Shown: piece after piece, positions 3,114-42,885 of the stretch | Numbering within the stretch: the stretch's first letter is position 1 | Layout: each line of letters opens with the position of its first letter | Assembly (NCBI GenBank): GCA_003427395.1 | Contig: BFEA01000001.1 | Span: 10,214,654 to 10,273,636 of the forward strand | Reading direction: 5' to 3' | Length of the DNA: 58,983 bases | DNA from: Chara braunii | Taxonomy: Eukaryota; Plantae; Charophyceae | The notes under the pieces: generated by a model | Seen by the model: only the letters and a program-made list of their open reading frames with translations | What the model was told of the DNA's origin: nothing | The model's database searches: none | Program-made: the position numbers and the translations under genes

Positions 3114-3954
3114 TTGACAAAGTAGAGTGTGTTTTGTCTTGTTGTTGAGGTGGCATTTGGCCACAGGTGATTTTTTCAGGATATCCGGGAACTAGAGTGG
3201 TACTAAGGAGATAGGTTTCCAAACTGTTAGGGGTGAAGGAGGGTGAGATATGAAGAGGGCATGGGGATTATAAAGAGGCAATTCAACCAAATGGGAGAAA
3301 ACGAGCAGATGGCATAATCCATAGAGGTCACTGGAAGATAGAAAGGCGATTTTAAAAAGAGGGCAAGGAGTGGAAAGTCGAAGTGGTAATATGTGAGGAA
3401 GAAGGGAAAAAGTTTTCAGTGTCGGGTGACACGAGATGGCAAACAACCACCGGGTGAGTTCACACGCTTCTACATGGGAGAGAAACAGGATTCCGATCCA
3501 ACCAGGCAAAGAACAACAAGGAGAAAGAGAACTTGTCATGTGACATCTCCCCAGTATCCATTCCCTTCCTCCTTGACTCGTTCCCTCTCACCTCCCCCAC
3601 CTTCCTCAAAAGGATGCCCCGCTCATTGTTACAAAAGAGCCATTGCAAAAAAAAAAAAAAAAAAAAAAAAATAGAGACAGGAAAACAGAAAAGAGAAAGG
3701 AATAAAATCATAAATTAACAACAATATTAACCACCATCAAGATGATGAAACTGGGTTACAGGAAAATAAGAGGGGGGGAATCACTCTCGTTCTACCAAGG
3801 GGCTATGAGGCACATGATGTTCAAACAGCTAGGGACCAGCCCATATGCCCGGCCACCTGGGTACAAAGCCCTGCTCCCAGATGCCGTCGGGGGAAGAGCA
3901 AGAGGGGTGGCAATGTAGCCTGAACAGGCAAACAACAACACAAAAAGAATAACA

Positions 3955-7751: not shown

Positions 7752-10700
7752 ATGAAAGTTACAAAAAAGAACAACAAACTAAGACCTCCGATCACTTAAT
7801 GTAAATGGCCTAGCCTCGGCTAAAGAATCTAAACGCCAGACGATCTTTGACCAACTGAAAGGGGTAGAGGGTAAGGATTGGCCGGATGCTATCTGTATAC
7901 AGGAAACTCACCTATTGGATAATGCAGATCATCATCATGTTCACAAGCAAATATGGCCTCATCGAGCCTTTAGGGCATATGCCCCCAGACCAGGCAGTGC
8001 AGGGGTAGTGATTTGGCTCCCGCCCGATTCGAGGATTGACCCCTTATATTGAGGAATGGATAAAGAAAGTGGTAGGTGGGTTTACGTATTAACTATGTTA
8101 GAGATAAAGGTAATAATCATTATATGTGTGTATGCGCCAACGAAGTGGGGGAGAGGAGATAATTTTTCAAAGGCTTGAAGGGACACCTCCCAGTAGGGAT
8201 TCCAGTCATCATAGCAGGGGATTTCAATGCAGCACTTAATCGACATCTTGATCGCTGACACATCCCCTCCCCATGCCGCTCATACATAGAGACTGATGAA
8301 CTTATAATTGATGAATTATGTCATTCTCTCAATCTCTTTGATGCATATAAACGCTCTCACCCAGTGAAACGCACCTACACATATTTTAGAAAAAACAAAC
8401 ATTGAAGGCTTCAAAGTCGCGCATTGATATAATATTACTGTCAGAGGAATTACAGGGGCACTACAAGTAGCAGAGATCTTCCCTCGTAGTGCCCTCCCAA
8501 GACTGGATCATGCAATGTGTGTCGCAATTCTGTCCTTCAGAAAAAAAACCTGACCAGGGCAGGGGATTTTACAAATTGAACATATCATTACTAAGTATAG
8601 AACGTTTCAAGGTATATCTACATAATATCTGAGATTTATGGAGATAACAAAAGCACGACATCAATGATGTTATACGTTGGTTTAACAACGGTCTATTATT
8701 CTTAGGTCGTAAATACAATTATGAATATTCAAAAATGTTGGCGGCACAACGTCATCTAGAAGAGACAAATCTATAAAATCAACTTCTGCAACTTCACCAA
8801 CAAGAAGAAGAGTTAGAGGACGACTCCCAATTATTAACCCTCATTGAACAAATCAACAATTTGGAAGACAAACTACTTACTTTTATGGAACACAGATGAC
8901 AAGGAATCCGCATTAGATTGAAGTTATCTAAATACAATATTGAAGGAATTATGGATGTAAGATTTTTTGTCAAAGTTAAAGTAAGATCTGATAGATCAAT
9001 CATTGAAGCATTCAAGGATCCACAAAACGAACACCACCCCTTAGTAACCTCAACGACAACATGCACCTATATAGCAAGAAAATATTACAAAAAAAAAATC
9101 ACTGCTGAATGTAAAAGCCTTCCCAAAACTCAGAGGATGATAAAAATAGAAGAACTTATCCAACTCTTAAATAAATCGTTATATGATCTGCAAAGAAGCG
9201 AACTAAAGAAACCTCTCATGAAGGAAGAGATCTGAACATCGCTTATGCTGGTGGAAGAGGAAAAAACACCGGGTATTGATGGTCTTCCCAAAGAATTTTA
9301 GGAAACAATATGGACTCATATCTTACAAGATCTGATGAAGTTTTACAATGTTATTTGGGATTCAAGGAATATGGGAGAAATAATGAGTCAGGGGATCCTA
9401 ACAGTATTATATAAAAAAGGGGACAAAATGAATATTCGTAATTATAGACCAATCACCCTTCTCATCGTCATCTACAAATTAGTAGCAAAAACATTCGCTA
9501 ATCGATTAATGAAAGTGATTACTGAAATTATTCACCCAACTTAAACAGGATTTATTTCAGGAAGGAACATACAAGACAATAATCTTTTGATTAATAAACT
9601 GGTGAAACAACCAAGACGATCAAAGAACAATACAACGTTCATCTTCATAGACTTCGAAAAAACATATGACCATGTGGACTGAATATTATAGACAAGTGTA
9701 TGGAAAAATCCAACTTTGATCCTTGTTTTAGAAGATGGGTGAAGATCCTACATATAAACGTCACAACAAAAGTTATGATTAATGGTAACTTAGCCCCTCC
9801 CGTTCAGCTCGAGCGATTAGTGAGACAAGGTGACCCGATAACTCCTTACCTCTTTGTAATAGTGATGGAGGCCTTAGCGGTTAATTTAATACAAAATAGA
9901 GACATTAAACGTATTAAAGTCACTTCTATCTCAGAGGAGGTCATCCCCATATGTTCCCTGTTTGTCGATGACCTGTCCTTAATGATAGATGCCTCAGAGA
10001 AAAATATGAGAGCAATCAAATTATTGATGGATAAATTTTGTGCCCTATCTGACATGTGGATCAACTAGGGACTAAGACGCAAGGATGGTGAATTCATCAT
10101 TAGGGGGTGAGACCACCAGAGCAACCTCATATCAATTGGCCTCCCCCCTCATCGACGATTAGAGTGTTAGGATTCTCCCTGTCAAGAGAAGGAAAACCAA
10201 CAACAAATAATGAATGGATCTCACAACCCGTTCTGACAAAATTGGAAGTATGGAAAGATAAACCGAGGTCTCTGATAGGAAGATCACTAATTATTAACAA
10301 TGTCATACTAGCTGCTCTTTGGTACAAATTTGTCATATGGTCACTATACAGAACTGCCCTCCAAGCCTTACAAAAGCAAGTGACAACCTATCTTTGGAGA
10401 GGAAATCATAAATACAAAAATGTGATCAGTAGGGTAGCCTGACGTGCGGTGATCCAGCCTAAATCAAAGGGTGGCTTGGGTATTTTGGACCCAAACACAC
10501 AAGCACTAACACTATCTATCCAATGGATTAAGAGGTTGCTCTTTAACGTACAAACGTCGTGGCAGACGCTCGCATGAGAATAGATTTCAAGCATGACGCC
10601 ATAAGTCTCGGATGATACAGACCCGATGATATGGTTAGAGAATCTACACTGGACTATCCCAAGGAGTTACACACAGGATGCTAACAATGAGTCAACTTCA

Positions 10701-24410: not shown

Positions 24411-24441
<31 letters not shown>

Positions 24442-24464
24442 GTGTGTGTGTGCGTGTCACACAA

Positions 24465-24509
<45 letters not shown>

Positions 24510-25746: not shown

Positions 25747-27362
25747 ATGGAGGCACGACAGGCGATCCCCCGGTCCGGTGGGGAGCAGGTCGGAGGAAGG
25801 CGGTGCGGCGGGAGCCTGTCGACCGTTGGCAGGGCCTCCCAGCGGGTTGGGTGTGATGAATTGCCACCGCACTTGCAACCACTCCCTGGCTCATCGGACG
25901 AGGAGGAGGAGGTGGAGAGACGGCCACAAACCGTGTCGTTGGGCAGCGGATCAACGCAGGAGTGGTCAGCCACGGAGCTGTGCGGGACGGGCGGCGGCGT
26001 GTACGAGCAGTCGTTCACTGAACTCCTTCGGCCTGGCCTTGGCGAAGACGAAGGAGATGGCCGTGTCAACCTGTCGTTCGGTTTGTCCACCGGGCGGTCT
26101 ACAACTCCATCGCGCACAGTGCTCGTGCGACCCCACCCTGGCGACGAAGGCGGCCAATTGACAGTTGTTGATCGATCAGCGAGGACGAGGGCGTTGGCGA
26201 GTGAGACGGCGGGAGCGAACCGGAACTCGTCGACGGCCCAACCACGGGCGGCCTCTCTGTCCAAGGGCGCCCAGGGTCGGCCGGAGTGGATGCAGTTGCC
26301 ATCTCCCCTGTCTGTGGCGTCGGAAGTGGCACGAGGCCGTGGCGTCGGAGTCGACGGCGGGACCGACTTCTTGGATGCTGGTAATGGTCGCGACGGGAGG
26401 GAGGTGTGGAGGGACCTGCGGCGGGATCACCGGCTGCGGCGAGAGGAATACATCACACGGGGGGTGGAGCGTCTTCACGTGGGAGACCGGGAGAACGAGA
26501 ACGAGACGGACGATCCACCGGCGGAAGCAGACGATGACGACGACGACGAAGACAACGACGTAGAGTGTGGGGAAGGGGGGGGTGGTCACGCGTCGCCATC
26601 GTTGCAGACCGACATGGCTGGTAAGGGTGGGAAGTCCAAGCCTTCCGGCCGCAATGCTCGTTCGCGGGCGAAAAAAGGGCAGGGAAAGGGGAGCGGTGGC
26701 GAAGGCGATGGTGATGCGGAGGAGAAGCGCAACTTCTGGTCCGTGGAACACATTATAGCCCTCATAAGGGCTAAACGTGACCAAGATGCGCATATGCAGG
26801 GGATGGGGCACGCATACGCATGAATGAAACCGCGCGAATGGAAATGGCAAGACGTCGCCCAAAGGTTGAAGAACGTCGGCGTGTACAGGAATGCGGAGAA
26901 ATGCGGGAAGAAGTGGGACAATCTAATGCAGCAGTTCAAGAAAGTCCATCACTTTCAGTCACCATCAGGGGGTGCCGACTTTTTCCAGTTGACGTCGAAG
27001 GAGAGGGCGAGCAGGGGCTTCAATTTCACGATGGATCGCGCAGTTTATGACGAGATAGAGGGGTCGACTGGGATGAACCACACCATCCACCCGAGGAACG
27101 TGGTAGACACCGGTGCGTCTGGCGGCGTGCGCCCACCTTCGACGTCTTACATGGATCCTGACTCGGTGGCGGACGGGGAAGGTGTTGCAGGGCGAGAAGA
27201 CGACGAGGAGGGGTCGACGCGAGGCTCTTCGCAGATGACGGGCACCCCCGACGGTTCTGGGAAAAGGAAGAACACGAGGCAGCAGACTTTCGAGGCGCTG
27301 ACGGAATGCATGGAGAAACACGGGGAGCTGATGGCGTCGACGATGGAGAGTGCGAGCAAGCG
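25747..27362 (+). pseudogene. Harbinger Myb/SANT (trihelix-like) DNA-binding protein; one in-frame stop at 26821; 3' end lies in the gap
   Basis: FWSVEHIIALIRAK...WKWQDVAQRL...RNAEKCGKKWDNLMQQFKK. Confidence 0.88.
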
Positions 27363-28379
27363 NNNNNNNNNNNNNNNNNNNNNNNNNNNNNNNNNNNNNN
27401 NNNNNNNNNNNNNNNNNNNNNNNNNNNNNNNNNNNNNNNNNNNNNNNNNNNNNNNNNNNNNNNNNNNNNNNNNNNNNNNNNNNNNNNNNNNNNNNNNNNN
27501 NNNNNNNNNNNNNNNNNNNNNNNNNNNNNNNNNNNNNNNNNNNNNNNNNNNNNNNNNNNNNNNNNNNNNNNNNNNNNNNNNNNNNNNNNNNNNNNNNNNN
27601 NNNNNNNNNNNNNNNNNNNNNNNNNNNNNNNNNNNNNNNNNNNNNNNNNNNNNNNNNNNNNNNNNNNNNNNNNNNNNNNNNNNNNNNNNNNNNNNNNNNN
27701 NNNNNNNNNNNNNNNNNNNNNNNNNNNNNNNNNNNNNNNNNNNNNNNNNNNNNNNNNNNNNNNNNNNNNNNNNNNNNNNNNNNNNNNNNNNNNNNNNNNN
27801 NNNNNNNNNNNNNNNNNNNNNNNNNNNNNNNNNNNNNNNNNNNNNNNNNNNNNNNNNNNNNNNNNNNNNNNNNNNNNNNNNNNNNNNNNNNNNNNNNNNN
27901 NNNNNNNNNNNNNNNNNNNNNNNNNNNNNNNNNNNNNNNNNNNNNNNNNNNNNNNNNNNNNNNNNNNNNNNNNNNNNNNNNNNNNNNNNNNNNNNNNNNN
28001 NNNNNNNNNNNNNNNNNNNNNNNNNNNNNNNNNNNNNNNNNNNNNNNNNNNNNNNNNNNNNNNNNNNNNNNNNNNNNNNNNNNNNNNNNNNNNNNNNNNN
28101 NNNNNNNNNNNNNNNNNNNNNNNNNNNNNNNNNNNNNNNNNNNCGCCCTTGCCGCCGTCAACGTCCATCCGCCATTCGTCGTCGTCGACCTTTCAGTCAT
28201 TCGTCGTCGCCCTGACCGTCATTCGCCACCCTGTAATCCATCCGTGTACTCATAGCTGTCCGTTCCATTCTGTCTTCCATTCTCGCCGCCCTGCGATCAT
28301 CCAACCGCCGCGCGGTGTACTCGTCCGCAAGTTCTGCGAACCACCGACCGCGATCGAAGGTGCTTTTGTCGGATCCGCC

Positions 28380-31378: not shown

Positions 31379-32738
31379 TCACTGCGCAATCATCCGCTCC
31401 GCCAATGCGTCCCTCAATATCAGCGCATCCCCCATCGTAGACTCCATGCACACTGGCCTCAATGGCTGATGCATCCCCAGATCCACTCTACAACGCACGC
31501 CGTCTGGACCCACTTCCCACAGCAGATTGTCGTCAAACGGGACGCCGGCGTCGATGAGTATGTTGTGGAGGATGCAGACGGCGACAAATTGTTGTGGCAA
31601 GCTGTCCATGTTGCACTTGTGGGTGCGGAGGAACAACCTCCACATCCCCTTCAGTCTGCCAAACGCCCTCTCCACTGCTCCCCTGGCCGTCTTCTGTTTG
31701 TTGTCGAAGCGTGCCTCCGTCGGGTGTTGCGCGAGACCGCCGTAAGGGACGACTATCCATTCCGACTGCGGATAACCATTGTCGCCGAGCAAGTAGCCAT
31801 TAGTCCGCACACCGAAAGGCAGCATCACATGCGGGCCAGTGAAAAGTTGTCCTGACTCCGCGAGCACCCACAAACTCGACAGGTTCAGCATCCTCATGTT
31901 ATGCACACTCCCCGGATAACCGACGAAGACGTCCAACACACGGAAGTTCATGTCGACCACCACTTGCGCCTGCACGGAGAATCGACGTCTCCTGTCGCAG
32001 TAGTCCCCACCGTTGGCGTTCGCGGGTTTGTCGATGTAGATATGTGTGCAGTCGATGCACCCATGGTAGTTTGGAAACCCCTTGGCCGCGAAGGCGCGCA
32101 ACACGACCGCCTTTTGCAAACCTGTGGGCCATGATATCTTGTCGGGGTAAGCAGTCAGCAACGCCGCCGTGACGTCACGCACCGCCGTGATGTCGGAAGC
32201 CCTCCCGATGCCGAAGCTACACGTCCCGCTGTCGTACGTCTCCCCCGTCGCCCACCTATACAGTGCATACGCAATGATGTGGTCTGGCTGCAAAGGCACC
32301 CTTTAGAACGTCACACGACGTTCAAGGAGTGGGGAAAGAGTCTCCGCGATCTCGCGGAAAACACGAGGCGACATTCGAAGCTTCTCCTTGAAGTAATCAT
32401 CCGTGGCGTCATCACATTGCCGCAGATCCTCCCACGTGCCGCCGGTTCGCCGCTTCACCCACCACCGTGGAGTTGCCCGTGGAAACCCCCCGCACCCCAT
32501 CGCGTAGCAGACCTCCAGCACCGCGTCGGAAATGGCAGCCACATCCAAGCACTGCCCAGTCGTCAGAAGCGCCATGAGCTTGCGCCGTGCACGAACAGCC
32601 GCTTTGAAGTTNGNGTCNTTGCTCGCCATCTGGCAGCNGAAGAGGACGGCATTAACCACCGCAGCAATAGCNGTCCTCTCCGCCGNCGTCAAACCACCGC
32701 GCCCTGCCCCGCCGTCAACGTCCATCNCAGACGCCGCT
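31379..32738 (-). pseudogene. Harbinger DDE transposase (HARBI1-like) with an in-frame stop at ~32303
   Basis: FKEKLRMSPRVF, ALYRWATG, GCIDCTHI, VGYPGSVHN, LLGDNGYP, ARGAVERAFGRLKGMWR, VCILHN. Confidence 0.93.
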
Positions 32739-36391: not shown

Positions 36392-36417
36392 AATGTCTTT
36401 TTTTTTTTCTTTTTTTT

Positions 36418-36462
36418 TTTCTCGATTTATGCATGTCATCCTTGCGCAGGGGCCACGCTAAT
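36418..36462 (-). ncRNA. U6: U6 snRNA fragment, 3' part (pseudogene), followed by poly(A)
   Basis: Minus strand ATTAGCGTGGCCCCTGCGCAAGGATGACATGCATAAATCGAGAAA; 2 mismatches to plant-type U6 as recalled. Confidence 0.93.
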
Positions 36463-38446
36463 ATGGATAGGGACGGCCATCCTCTCGATTTATGTGTTTT
36501 GAATCTGTTTGTTTGGCTGTTTACCTTTGATTAAGATGGCTGGCAATATGGATAGGGACGGCTGCTTTCATTGTGGCTCTTTGAATCACTGGATGCGAGA
36601 ATGCCCTCGTAGGGTTTCGAGCTTTCGCCCTCCTGTTATGGGCGCTAATGCGGTACCGACAGGACCTCCAATATTGACCCTGCCTCCTCATGCTCATTCG
36701 GCCCCGGCGCCGCCGGCTAATATTGCTCCCTCTTATGGTCTGTCTTCGTCCTCCAATTTCAGATCCGGCAACAACACGGGCTCTGGGAGTGGCCAACAAC
36801 CTCAACAGGCTCGCCCGAATTGGTGGGCTCGTAATCAAGAAAGGCTTGATAAAGTGTATGGTAAGTATGTCGAAGACACCGAACGAGAAGCTAAGAGGAA
36901 GGAGGAGGAAGCCAGAGATAAGGCTAAAAAGGAAGAAGAGGAGAGATTGTTGGCATGGAAAATTGAACGGGAGAAGTTTGAAGCAGCAATGGGAGAACGA
37001 TTGGAAAAAAGGCTGGACGCCTGAGCGATTATGAAAGGCAAGTCGGTTGATGTGAGTGGGGGGGATGTTGTTAATGAGGAGGCGCAGAGGTTGCGCAAGG
37101 AGAATGACGATCTGAAACGTAAATTAAGTGAGGTGTTGTGCCTGGCTGGGGAAGACCGGGTTTTATATCTACAGAATGAGGTCATGGAACTGCGTCGGAA
37201 GGTTGGTGACAAGCAAGTCAACGAGGATGTGATTACTTCCTTGAAGACCGAGATTAGCGAGCTTAAGCAGTCGGCATTTATGAAGATCAATTTTGAACAG
37301 GAGATCGCAGGGTTGAGAAAGGAGGTGAGCGTACTACGTGATCAGAATGAGCGTGTGGTTTCGGAGGCTGGGCAATGGAGAGAGCAAGCCTTGCGGCCAG
37401 GGAATAAGTGGGGAAGTGTGGTGTTGCAGACACCGGAAGTCACAAATCGTGGATCGCCGAAACCACATTGGACGGATAATGTACGGGAAGGGGAGAAATG
37501 GAAGGCTGAATATCGCAACCTGCAGAGCCTTCATCGTTTGGCTAATATCGAAGCAGAGGCGCTCAAGGAGAAGCGGGCTGAGGCTGAAGCCCGGAGGATG
37601 GAGGCGGAAAAGCAGGTTAAGGTGCTGGAGGAGGAGATGAGGAAGCTGATGGCAAGCGGGGAGAGGGGTAACGAAGGAAATATTGGGGGCACGAATCTTA
37701 AAGAGCGACTTGAAGAGGCGGCGCTTCGGTCGGCTCGGAAGGGAGTCAAAGCGACGCCAGGGAGAATGGGTGTTAGGGCCGCGTCGTCGTCAGCACGGCC
37801 TGAGAAGGAGCTTACTCCGAAGCAGGTCGCTACCTCGGTCAATGACCGTACGGAGTTTACCGAGGAACAGAAGCGGCAGCTGCGTATGCTTCGCAAAGCA
37901 GGGTTGGAGCCCATGTGTAAAGAGGAAGGTGTGAAGCTCGGTAAGTTCGAGGATACTGTTTGCGATCTGGCTGAAGCTCGTGCTCGAAAAGCCTTTGGGG
38001 GCGTTGCAGGCCCATCTAAAGGGACTAGCAGCATTCAAGAGGTAAGCGACGATGCTTCGAAGAGCTCCGGCGATGCCGAGGAAGACGAGGGAAAGTCGGT
38101 GGAGCTATAGGAACCTTTCCCGAACGCGTCCTCGCTTTGGTCTTTTGCTGATGAGTGCCGACGAAGTAGGTGCGAAGTAGGGACTTCGGCGGTTGACATC
38201 CACTCTCTCTGTTCTAAGTCTCCTTCTCCTCAAGATTGCTCTTCTTTCTTTCTTCGGGATGCTGAGTACAATGGTTTCTTTAGGCTGGTGGTGATGGGGC
38301 TTATCGCTTTGTCAATGGTCGTCATGAAGGTGTGTTTAGGCCTTATGGCCGGGATGAAGGACTGATATAGGCTATGTGCCGGGATGGTCTGCTCCATGAT
38401 TGGTTGTGACTAATGGATGTTTTTGCGAGTATCTCACACTCTCACA
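36463..38446 (+). mobile_element. ~2 kb retroelement-like insertion within U6, 9-bp TSD
   Basis: Flanked by cacgctaat (36454-36462) and catgctaat (38447-38455); removing it and one TSD copy restores contiguous U6. Confidence 0.85.
36536..38110 (+). pseudogene. Gag/ORF1-like protein: N-terminal CCHC knuckle and long coiled coil (~524 aa; one in-frame TGA at 37022)
   Basis: GCFHCGSLNHWMREC; ORFs 36509..37024 and 37031..38110 are in the same frame; E/K/R-rich heptads. Confidence 0.8.
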
Positions 38447-38473
38447 CATGCTAATCTTCTCTGTATCGTTCCA
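38447..38473 (-). ncRNA. U6: U6 snRNA fragment, upstream part (ACAGAGA box and AGC triad)
   Basis: Minus strand TGGAACGATACAGAGAAGATTAGCATG matches the conserved U6 core at all 27 positions. Confidence 0.93.
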
Positions 38474-38690
38474 TTTTTTTTTATTTTTTATTTTTTATTA
38501 TTTTTTTTTTTTGGTGGAAAGTTGTCCTTTATATTTCATAAAAATGGAACGAGGCCGGGGACCTCACAATTCAACCCGGAGTTATCCTGGCAGCCTCAGC
38601 CAGTTTCGCTTACGAGCCAAGCTCGAAGACCCACCTACTGCTCTTGAAATATCAATTCTACTGCTGGAAACCGGGTCCAGCGTCCCATTA
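38474..38690 (-). mobile_element. LINE 3' tail (type B, preceded by half of a type A motif) with poly(A) abutting U6
   Basis: Reverse complement of 36256-36319; T-rich run 38474-38512; GGGACGCTGGACCCGGTTTCCAGCAG at ~38660-38686. Confidence 0.75.
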
Positions 38691-40505: not shown

Positions 40506-41112
40506 AAAAAAAGAAGAAGAAAAACAAAAAACTAGCAGAAGATTGTTAGGGCGACCCAAAAAAGAGAAAAAAAAGAAAAAGAAAAATGGAAAAACGGCCA
40601 ACCCTGCAACCCTCCCAGACCCCCGTTTTTCTTTCCTTCTTCATTTCGGACATTTTGGATTTCCCAAAGGAGAAATGCCGGGGGCCGGCCACAAACAACG
40701 CCGCACGACCTCTGCAGACTACCGCTGGTCATTCCCTTTTTGCCTCTGCTAGGACCACCCGAACGACCAATCCGTCCTATGACAATGACCGCACCCTCTG
40801 CGCCTATCTAAAACCTTGAAAGAGTCGTCTACATTACCCGATCCGGAAACTCGGTGCGCGCCAAAAACGCAATCGGGTATAGCGCAGCCTCCTGGCTGCG
40901 AACTTCGTCAAACATAGCACATGACTTCACAGACGCTCCATGGTGGGGAGCAGCGTCTGCCACGAAATCAGTGTCCAGGTGCAATAAAAAATGATACAAC
41001 TTACGAGCATACACATAGCCTACGGGCACATACTATGTATCGTCAAAAAGAGCTGCCCGGTAAACTGTAGGCAGAGAGGGAGAAAAGGACAACAAACTAG
41101 GGGCTGTGACAA

Positions 41113-41163
41113 ACTGTTTCGTCGGTGTTTCATCGACTCACAGGAGGCTGAACCCTCAACGGT
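41113..41163 (-). ncRNA. Type III hammerhead ribozyme, degenerate copy A
   Basis: ACCGT-T-GAGG-GTTCAG-CCTC-CTG(-)TGA-GTCGATG-AAA-CACCGAC-GAA-ACAGT. Confidence 0.8.
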
Positions 41164-41608
41164 CTGCAGAATCCCATAACTGATTACACTGTAAGTGATA
41201 ATCCACCTTAACCCCAACTGTGGTTAAGTATCAACGACTGCCCGACAACTGATACCCTGAGGTAGGCACCAACCACTGCCATCAAGGTACCTGTGATGCA
41301 AACCAAAGCAGACTATCACTCACCCACGCCAGATGGAAAACTCCACAGACTGTCGGTTCACACCCCATCACAAGCCAGCAAAACACCCACGAAACAAAGA
41401 AAGGTCTGTCACAGCCAAAAAATACACTCCAGACACACCGTTGGCACTAGAGGGACAGCATGGCCGCCCCGACCACTGCCGCTCGATCTGACCAGAGAAA
41501 ATTGTAGCAGGGTGCTAGCGAAGTCATGGTAAATATCGTCAAAAAAAAATACCCCGTAAACTGTAGGCAGAGAGGGAGAAGAGCACACCAAACGAGGGGC
41601 TGTGACAA

Positions 41609-41660
41609 ACTGTGTCATTGGAGTTTTACCGACTCATCAGGAGGTTGTACCCTCAACAGT
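41609..41660 (-). ncRNA. Type III hammerhead ribozyme, degenerate copy B
   Basis: ACTGT-T-GAGG-GTACAA-CCTC-CTGATGA-GTCGGTA-AAA-CTCCAAT-GAC-ACAGT. Confidence 0.75.
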
Positions 41661-41835
41661 ATTCTGCACAATCCCATAACTGATTACACTGTACGTGATA
41701 AACAACCTTAACCCCGACTATGATTAAACATCAACGACGGTTCGGCAACTGATACCCTGAGGTGTGCACGAACCACTGCCCTCATATAATATACAACCAC
41801 AATACTAAGGCTGGGGAGGGGGTCACAATCAACTA

Positions 41836-42050
41836 ATGATGATAATAGGCGTTTTGATGACGACAAGTACCCCACCCTAAAATCTGCTAGACTGTGTGTG
41901 GGAGAGGAGAGGGCATGAGTCACTGGTTGGGTTGGGATCATCTGATGATGATGATAGGCGTTTTGATGACAAGTACCCCACCTTAAAACCAGCTAGACTG
42001 TGTGTGGGAGAGTAGAGGACGACGGATGTCAGTTACTAGTTGGTTGGGGG
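41836..42050. repeat. ~108-bp tandem duplication
   Basis: gatgat..ataggcgttttgatgac..aagtaccccacc..aaaa..gctagactgtgtgtgggagag twice. Confidence 0.8.
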
Positions 42051-42720: not shown

Positions 42721-42885
42721 GAGTCACAAAAATGAGTTATAATTGCACTATGGGCCAAGATACAGTTTCGAATTGTAGTTCGGGCAATGTATACAACCTA
42801 TCTTTCTGGCCAGGTAAGGTGCCTGAAGTGCAGTTGCAAACTGTATCTTGGGCCATAGTGCAATTATAACTCGTTTTTGTGACTC
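42721..42885. mobile_element. Fold-back MITE-like element (~65-bp inverted arms)
   Basis: gagtcacaaaaatgagttataattgcactatgggccaagatacagttt... / ...aaactgtatcttgggccatagtgcaattataactcgtttttgtgactc. Confidence 0.8.

Follow-up and report, generated by a model that had tools for sequence, protein, structure and literature searches.

Two inactivated copies of an abundant, transcribed, non-coding element family with a type III hammerhead ribozyme in Chara braunii

The window analysed here is the whole of a stretch of 58,983 nucleotides (nt) from the streptophyte alga Chara braunii (contig BFEA01000001.1, forward-strand positions 10,214,654 to 10,273,636). At 41038-41784 it carries, on the minus strand, two direct repeats that each hold the remains of a hammerhead ribozyme, and the question raised by this locus is what kind of element left two damaged ribozymes 497 nt apart. 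An earlier note, made from the letters of the window alone, had read the pair as a 497-nt retrozyme-like unit, the relic of an undescribed ribozyme-bearing retroelement or circular-RNA family. The relic of a ribozyme-bearing retroelement family has stood up and the functional unit has not: what remains at the locus is a pair of copies, old and inactivated, from a ribozyme-bearing, non-coding retroelement family that is both abundant and transcribed, and the 497-nt unit is more likely a by-product of their head-to-tail arrangement than a functional retrozyme unit.

On the simplest reading, the minus strand first has a copy that is 5'-truncated (41782 to 41525), then a short linker of TA-like sequence, and last a copy of full length, ~480 nt (~41518 to 41038), all of them lying in decayed (TA)n. 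It is this head-to-tail layout that gives rise to the two 256-nt “repeats” and to the 497-nt spacing. The features, in the same order and with the evidence for each in brackets, are:

41783-41800, no strand assigned: TA-rich upstream flank GTATATTATAT, remnant of the (TA)n target (AT/TA dinucleotide fraction of 0.28)
41525-41784, minus strand: copy B, the upstream, 5'-truncated copy, a direct repeat resembling a pseudo-long terminal repeat (pseudo-LTR) (alignment and boundary sequence)
41607-41662, minus strand: hammerhead B, decayed, predicted cut at 41655|41654 (sequence; the family majority differs)
41512-41524, minus strand: TA-like linker and junction, where copy B ends at its 3' side and the full-length copy starts at its 5' side (sequence and read depth)
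41285-41511, minus strand: 5' half of the full-length copy, the “spacer” of the earlier note (read depth, bridging contigs and fold)
41038-41284, minus strand: copy A, the 3' half of the full-length copy (alignment, boundary sequence and loose read ends)
41111-41165, minus strand: hammerhead A, type III, decayed (Rfam RF00008, 30.2 bits, model positions 1-54)
40998-41037, no strand assigned: decayed TA/TG-rich downstream flank, remnant of the microsatellite target (AT/TA fraction of 0.26)

The motif GUUGAGGG occurs once in each copy and places the predicted scissile bonds at 41655|41654 and 41158|41157, which are the positions, 497 nt apart, that had been claimed for them. GUU|GAGGG is found twice on the minus strand, and the cleavage triplet is GUU in both copies, in keeping with the NUH rule. 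Each copy shows the private damage that had been ascribed to it. The core of copy A reads CCUCCUG-UGAG, with A6 (the first A) of CUGAUGA deleted, and hammerhead A has two further changes in stem II and one in stem III (41161). Copy B has an intact CUGAUGA; its GAA is changed to GAC (A14>C), reading UGACACAG, and its stem II is broken (GUCGGUAAAACUCCAAU). An Infernal search with the Rfam model Hammerhead_3 (RF00008, gathering score of 48.5 bits), proposed as a check in the earlier note, returned copy A at 41111-41165 on the minus strand with 30.2 bits (E 3e-4 in a 1-kb search, 0.019 in the whole window) and gave no match for copy B; nothing in the window reached the gathering score. The alignment of copy A runs end to end with the model, and its open helix is helix III, i.e. 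the topology is that of type III. Neither window copy taken alone gave a hammerhead fold or folds better than shuffled sequences, and the minimum free energy (MFE) structure of copy B is not a hammerhead. Both ribozymes at the locus are predicted to be inactive and, because both are mutated at essential core positions, the locus should release no RNA.

Public sequencing runs, mapped on 40900-41900 at 80% likeness, enabled the two copies to be compared with the rest of their family. Almost every read departs from the window sequence at three sites of copy A (41126, 41133, 41161) and at four of copy B (41614, 41617, 41627, 41648), and at each of these sites the majority letter repairs a stem or the core (stems II and III in the case of copy A). 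A T inserted behind 41140, present in less than a third of the covering reads, restores A6 of CUGAUGA. The loose end before 41141 reads ...CUGAUGAGUCGGUGAAACUCCGACGAAACAGUC, which in RNA sense is CUGAUGA-GUCGG-UGAAACU-CCGAC-GAAAC-AGUC. A 65-nt motif made of the window sequence plus only those changes that are supported by reads has a three-way junction as its MFE structure (-22.7 kcal/mol). It has a stem III of 5 bp, extendable to 9 with G-U pairs, the triplet GUU at the cut, a stem I of 4 bp with a 6-nt loop, and a stem II of 5 bp (GUCGG/CCGAC) with the 7-nt loop UGAAACU, followed by GAAA. Judged by these letters, the family majority is a canonical type III hammerhead with a CUGAUGA...GAAA core. 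It shares its topology and core with RF00008 and comes near the model consensus in stem II and loop 2. The window copies differ from the model in their scores, and GUU in place of GUC as the triplet and a stem I of only 4 bp are further departures from it.

The consensus that the earlier note obtained by merging the two copies was therefore canonical in the right sense, in that the family consensus keeps both the CUGAUGA/GAAA core and the stem pairing; its 7-bp stem II (GUCGGUG/CACCGAC) is an artefact of merging decayed copies, the majority having 5 bp. The run data lend no support to GUU as a CpG-decayed form of GUC: the contig ends that were inspected read UUGAGGG, i.e. GUU|G at the cut. There is one hammerhead per element, ~120 nt from the element's 3' end.

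The family is large. In the DNA run X1, 14,642 contigs match at 80% or more, and the summed DNA depth across 41036-41680 amounts to 10^5 to 10^6, compared with ~50-200 in the unique flanks, this contig depth not being equal to a copy number. Members are also present in runs X5 (RNA by guess), X21 (raw oligo-dT RNA reads) and X19 (RNA by guess, under another organism label). First mates in X21 divide between the plus and minus strands at about 4:1; if the library is of the usual stranded kind, the family is transcribed mostly on the minus strand, which is the hammerhead-sense strand. The depth of RNA 3' of the motif relative to that 5' of it is 18-fold in X5 and 4.6-fold in X21, against 1.4-fold in DNA, and this asymmetry is consistent with cleavage in vivo, without being proof of it.

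The repeats themselves are real, and slightly longer than the ~245 bp first proposed: each is ~256 nt, with copy B at 41525-41784 and copy A at 41029-41284 on the minus strand, and the two are 84% identical in a pairwise alignment (84.5% across 251 nt in blastn). A repeat search divides them into three repeat-family pieces, offset by 496-500 nt. No further copy of the repeat was found in the window by blastn or by the repeat search, and Tandem Repeats Finder found no tandem array at the locus. The 5' boundary of copy B comes directly after TATATTATAT, and its 3' terminus is ...UUUUGACGAU; copy A terminates in ...CUUUUUGACGAU and adjoins decayed TA/TG-rich DNA. The AT/TA dinucleotide fraction of the flanks, 0.26-0.28, compares with 0.097 for the window as a whole. 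The junction between the copies has a DNA-run depth of 7,031 at 41512-41545, a ~20-fold drop from the 134,000-161,000 of the adjoining bins, and therefore the joint of the copy B 3' end with the spacer is rare in the family. The spacer proper (41285-41511) is highly repeated, with a depth of up to 1.2 million. Contigs of run X1 bridge repeat and spacer (record 2 covers 41069-41432 and record 7 covers 41236-41543), from which it follows that the spacer is part of the repeated element and not unique DNA.

Most differences between A and B are private to one copy, the other copy having the letter of the family majority, and three or four derived sites are common to both (41066/41562, 41176/41676 and 41217-8/41717-8). 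This pattern fits a derivation of A and B from one source or subfamily, followed by separate decay, and it would be compatible both with formation of the tandem at insertion and with two successive insertions. As the earlier note had it, the unit has no evident open reading frame (ORF): the longest one that overlaps the element is of 79 amino acids, and Pfam scans found no reverse transcriptase (RT) or other ORF in or beside it, the neighbouring ORFs being without an RT domain. Also upheld is the statement that the locus is neither an LTR retrozyme of the angiosperm kind nor a typical type I Penelope motif. There is no match to a tRNA-Met primer-binding site (PBS) within 2 mismatches in or near the element, no polypurine tract (PPT) upstream of copy A (purine fraction of 0.44), and no clear TG..CA termini on the element; no target-site duplication was found beyond TA/TG 4-mer words that the flanks share from the microsatellite. 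Directly upstream of the element, in the sense of the minus strand, lie two tandem units of ~106-109 nt (41828-42018, 91% identical), which are low-copy in the DNA run, at a depth like that of the unique flanks.

The places where family copies begin and end are informative about how they were made. At 41034-41044, and again at 41552, the loose ends continue as (TA)n as soon as ...GACGA is complete, and GACGA-(TA)n is the fixed 3' end of the family in most copies. At the other end, 67 ends of DNA contigs fall at 41140 and have, in the sense of the RNA, the sequence (TA)n-UUGAGGGUUCAGCCUCCUGA, which puts the start of these copies 1-2 nt 5' of the predicted cut. In X5, contigs jump back from 41653, which is 1 nt 3' of the cut, to 41040/41042 by way of TA-rich linkers such as ATATATG; these back-joints come from pairs of copies lying head to tail, the downstream one of which begins at the cut. 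Short copies of ~120 nt, which begin close to the cut and end with GACGA-(TA)n, have the appearance of 3' cleavage products that were retroposed.

The RNA of the element is strongly structured. The 497-nt RNA from cut to cut has a predicted energy of -186.6 kcal/mol (z -4.2), and the linear monomer (41520 to 41038) one of -190.7 kcal/mol (z -4.4), with no shuffled sequence as stable in either case. An arm in the 5' half (~41337-41416) is partly antisense to the hammerhead and pairs with the hammerhead strand in both folds; within it, 41381-41396 is 94% complementary to 41115-41130 (16-nt arms). The unit RNA is predicted to form a quasi-rod of ~300 nt that hides the hammerhead. Hiding a hammerhead within a rod in this way is characteristic of retrozymes and of viroid-like RNAs. 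The 86-nt stretch at 41214-41299 is skipped in many family copies, the joint 41213>41300 being seen in 2 DNA contigs and 43 RNA reads, and in others it is replaced by different sequence, as indicated by loose ends at 41213 and 41300. This variation suggests that there are subfamilies in which the apical domain of the rod is shorter or of another kind; the shorter form, at ~320 nt, would be less than a unit in its layout.

We consider it likely that these are non-autonomous elements with a type III hammerhead whose insertion into (TA)n was driven in trans, probably by elements of the Penelope-like kind. In the mechanism that we propose, the RNA of the element would cleave itself in vivo at GUU|G. 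It would then enter nicked (TA)n DNA by target-primed reverse transcription, often in the form of its ~120-nt 3' cleavage product only, with an RT that would be supplied in trans, most likely by a hammerhead-bearing Penelope-like (Chlamys-type) element of Chara braunii. In uncut RNA, the hammerhead would be hidden in the ~300-nt quasi-rod. Cleavage in combination with target-primed reverse transcription would account for the fixed GACGA-(TA)n 3' end, for the 5' ends near the cut and for the head-to-tail layout with its pseudo-LTRs. Two of the marks of non-autonomous Penelope-like elements are present, namely head-to-tail or partial-tandem insertion and a bias towards microsatellites, (TA)n being found at both kinds of copy end. 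The mark of an autonomous Penelope-like element, an ORF for an RT with or without a GIY-YIG endonuclease, is absent in and beside the element.

In addition to the restriction on contig depth given above, a number of observations weigh against this account. Around the cut, the 5' ends are spread between -2 and +1, others lie a few bases further in, and the agreement of the loose-end consensus is only 0.54, so the pile-up of 5' ends at the cut is real but not sharp. The step in depth at ~41140 coincides with the 1-nt deletion of copy A, where reads clip, and because of this clipping the RNA 5' ends can not be placed at the scissile bond; nor does the read mapping list any discrete RNA start or end sites. 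No Penelope-like RT was found in the window, the Penelope-like partner being one that we infer. The hammerheads so far described from Penelope-like elements are of type I or minimal (PMC4209133, PMC7761336), whereas those of this family are of type III. The usual targets of Chlamys elements are (CA)n and (C)n, and it is for Naiads that (TA)n is named (Craig et al. 2021, PMC8557442), whereas (TA)n is the target here.

The most serious competitor of mobilisation in trans is a true retrozyme-like circular-RNA unit. Here both hammerheads would cut, the 497-nt RNA would be ligated into a quasi-rod circle that serves as the transposition intermediate, and reverse transcription of more than one unit would yield the 1.5-mer seen in the window. 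Two tandem hammerheads at 497 nt from each other are what such a unit should have, the family is transcribed on the hammerhead strand, and the unit folds far better than shuffles (z -4.2) into a hammerhead-masking rod like those of viroid-like RNAs and retrozymes; in a proposal of Cervera and de la Pena (2014), circles serve as templates for the head-to-tail arrays of Penelope-like elements. This reading is nevertheless rather unlikely. The back-joints observed carry TA linkers and are therefore those of genomic neighbours, while a true circle junction would map colinearly on the 1.5-mer, and the copy-to-copy junction at 41512-41545 is ~20-fold rarer than the adjoining bins. In addition, the linear 3' end is fixed at GACGA-(TA)n in most copies, and both hammerheads at the locus are dead.

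The remaining alternatives are further from the data. If the locus were part of a self-cleaving satellite, or had arisen by segmental duplication on the spot, in the manner of the hammerhead satellites of newts, cave crickets and schistosomes and through unequal crossing-over and not retroposition, it would show the 1.5 units of a ~497-nt repeat with a hammerhead in each unit that are seen here. We regard this as very unlikely, given that Tandem Repeats Finder reports no array, that no further units adjoin the locus or lie elsewhere in the window, and that family copies are dispersed, with defined ends and (TA)n flanks of their own. The two 256-nt repeats could also be the LTRs of a classical plant-type retrozyme that owes its mobility to a Ty3/Gypsy element, with a type III hammerhead in either LTR and 240 nt of internal sequence between them, and the element is indeed non-coding with such a hammerhead in each direct repeat. 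It is extremely unlikely that this is so, as the “internal” part is itself among the most repeated segments and the family frequently has copies that start near the cut and end at (TA)n; nor does the locus have the tRNA-Met PBS, PPT (purine 0.44), target-site duplication or clear TG..CA ends of such an element, its flanks being TA microsatellite. That neither copy reaches the Rfam gathering score or folds better than shuffles would agree with an unrelated repeat that looks like a hammerhead by chance. The match to the full-length model (E 3e-4), the majority letters that repair every defect of core and stem, and the clustering of copy ends at the predicted cut all speak against chance, and the family majority brings this reading close to being refuted.

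Among described systems, the closest structural match to the family is to the non-autonomous Chlamys-type elements. Craig et al. (2021, PMC8557442) found canonical hammerheads in two Chlamys subclades of Chara braunii itself, and reported microsatellite targets as well as non-autonomous Chlamys elements with pseudo-LTRs and head-to-tail insertions. With the Chlamys-type, Chlamys-2_cBra and PLE-X elements (PMC8557442) the family has in common LTR-mimicking head-to-tail or partial-tandem insertions, target duplications hidden by microsatellites and a hammerhead near the 3' end. The host species is the same, Chara braunii, and non-coding derivatives of Penelope-like elements are known, e.g. MRC1 in Chlamydomonas. 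The family differs from Chlamys-type elements in that, at this locus, it has no RT, endonuclease or gag ORF, and in its full type III motif and its (TA)n target. The novelty that the earlier note claimed for the family is thus qualified: no description of it was found in the literature searched, but canonical hammerheads in Chlamys elements of Chara braunii had already been published (PMC8557442). The same search did not find short type III hammerhead retroposons in microsatellites, and that paper was its only relevant link between Chara and hammerheads.

The non-LTR retrozymes of metazoans (Cervera and de la Pena 2020, PMC7229834; 10.64898/2026.07.22.740005) are likewise short, non-coding and transcribed, with hammerhead repeats and without LTR, PBS or PPT, and they too are thought to be non-autonomous derivatives of Penelope-like elements, as put forward for animal retrozymes in the preprint of Li et al. 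(2026, 10.64898/2026.07.22.740005). Their hammerheads are of type I, often with a weak helix III and acting as a dimer, their tandem units are of 150-400 nt, and their circular RNAs are proven (PMC7229834, PMC7761336, 10.64898/2026.07.22.740005). The Chara family, in contrast, has a type III motif with a stable helix III, a full-length unit of ~480 nt, and copies that are mostly dispersed or 5'-truncated in (TA)n. In eukaryote genomes, type III hammerheads are known mainly from angiosperm LTR retrozymes, and horizontal transfer has been suggested in one review as the origin of these hammerheads (PMC7761336). With the angiosperm elements (Cervera et al. 2016, PMC4918200) the family shares a type III hammerhead in two direct repeats, the non-coding character, a strongly structured RNA between the cuts and membership of the green lineage. 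It does not share their LTR termini, tRNA-Met PBS, PPT and 4-bp duplications, and lies in a microsatellite instead. The sizes differ as well, with a repeat of 256 nt here versus ~350 nt in angiosperms, and a unit of 497 nt versus 600-1000 nt.

A family of a streptophyte alga in which a full type III hammerhead goes together with a viroid-like rod and with the insertion habits of Penelope-like elements would provide a testable link between these groups. It is possible, although we think it improbable, that full-length RNAs of ~480-500 nt are cut by the type III hammerhead and ligated into viroid-like quasi-rod circles. In that case the family would stand for a lineage of non-LTR “type III retrozymes” with (TA)n as their target, in a streptophyte alga, and would connect the hammerhead elements that go with Penelope-like elements to the LTR retrozymes and viroid-like RNAs of flowering plants. 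The family, with its thousands of genomic copies, may record self-cleavage in vivo in its 5' ends; the locus described here contributes its ~480-nt long form and a head-to-tail example in which both ribozymes are dead.

A metagenome scan with the 29-nt majority core as the query hit two contigs, Ga0114903_1000585 and Ga0114902_1000484, which are 99.6% identical to each other. The hammerhead on them (3440-3494 on the plus strand of one, with the same sequence at 8195-8223 on the minus strand of the other) is an intact type III motif with an Rfam score of 53.6 bits, is identical to the family majority in core, stem II and loop 2, and is located just upstream of an ATG with a purine-rich leader. 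The contigs were rejected as members of the family, there being no similarity outside the core; they share only a near-consensus motif with it and are unrelated elements.

Elsewhere in the window, a 66-nt inverted repeat at 42721-42885 (88% complementary, with a 33-nt loop), ~1 kb from the hammerhead repeats, has the form of a MITE-like (miniature inverted-repeat transposable element) or hairpin-forming element. An ORF of the Myb/SANT-like kind at 26824-28215 on the plus strand (PF13837, E 5e-8) and a DDE_Tnp_4/Plant_tran transposase ORF at 31379-32299 on the minus strand (E 2e-29) point to a DNA transposon of the PIF/Harbinger type, in line with a plant-lineage genome. Two sub-threshold matches to U6 snRNA lie 2 kb apart on the minus strand (36404-36464 with 35.2 bits and 38447-38484 with 26.4 bits); the DNA that separates them has zf-CCHC ORFs (36509-37024, E 1.4e-5), an arrangement that would suit a U6 gene split by an insertion. 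At 24437-24506 on the minus strand, a match to mir-297 with 44.4 bits, below the gathering score of 90, is probably low-complexity sequence and not a microRNA.

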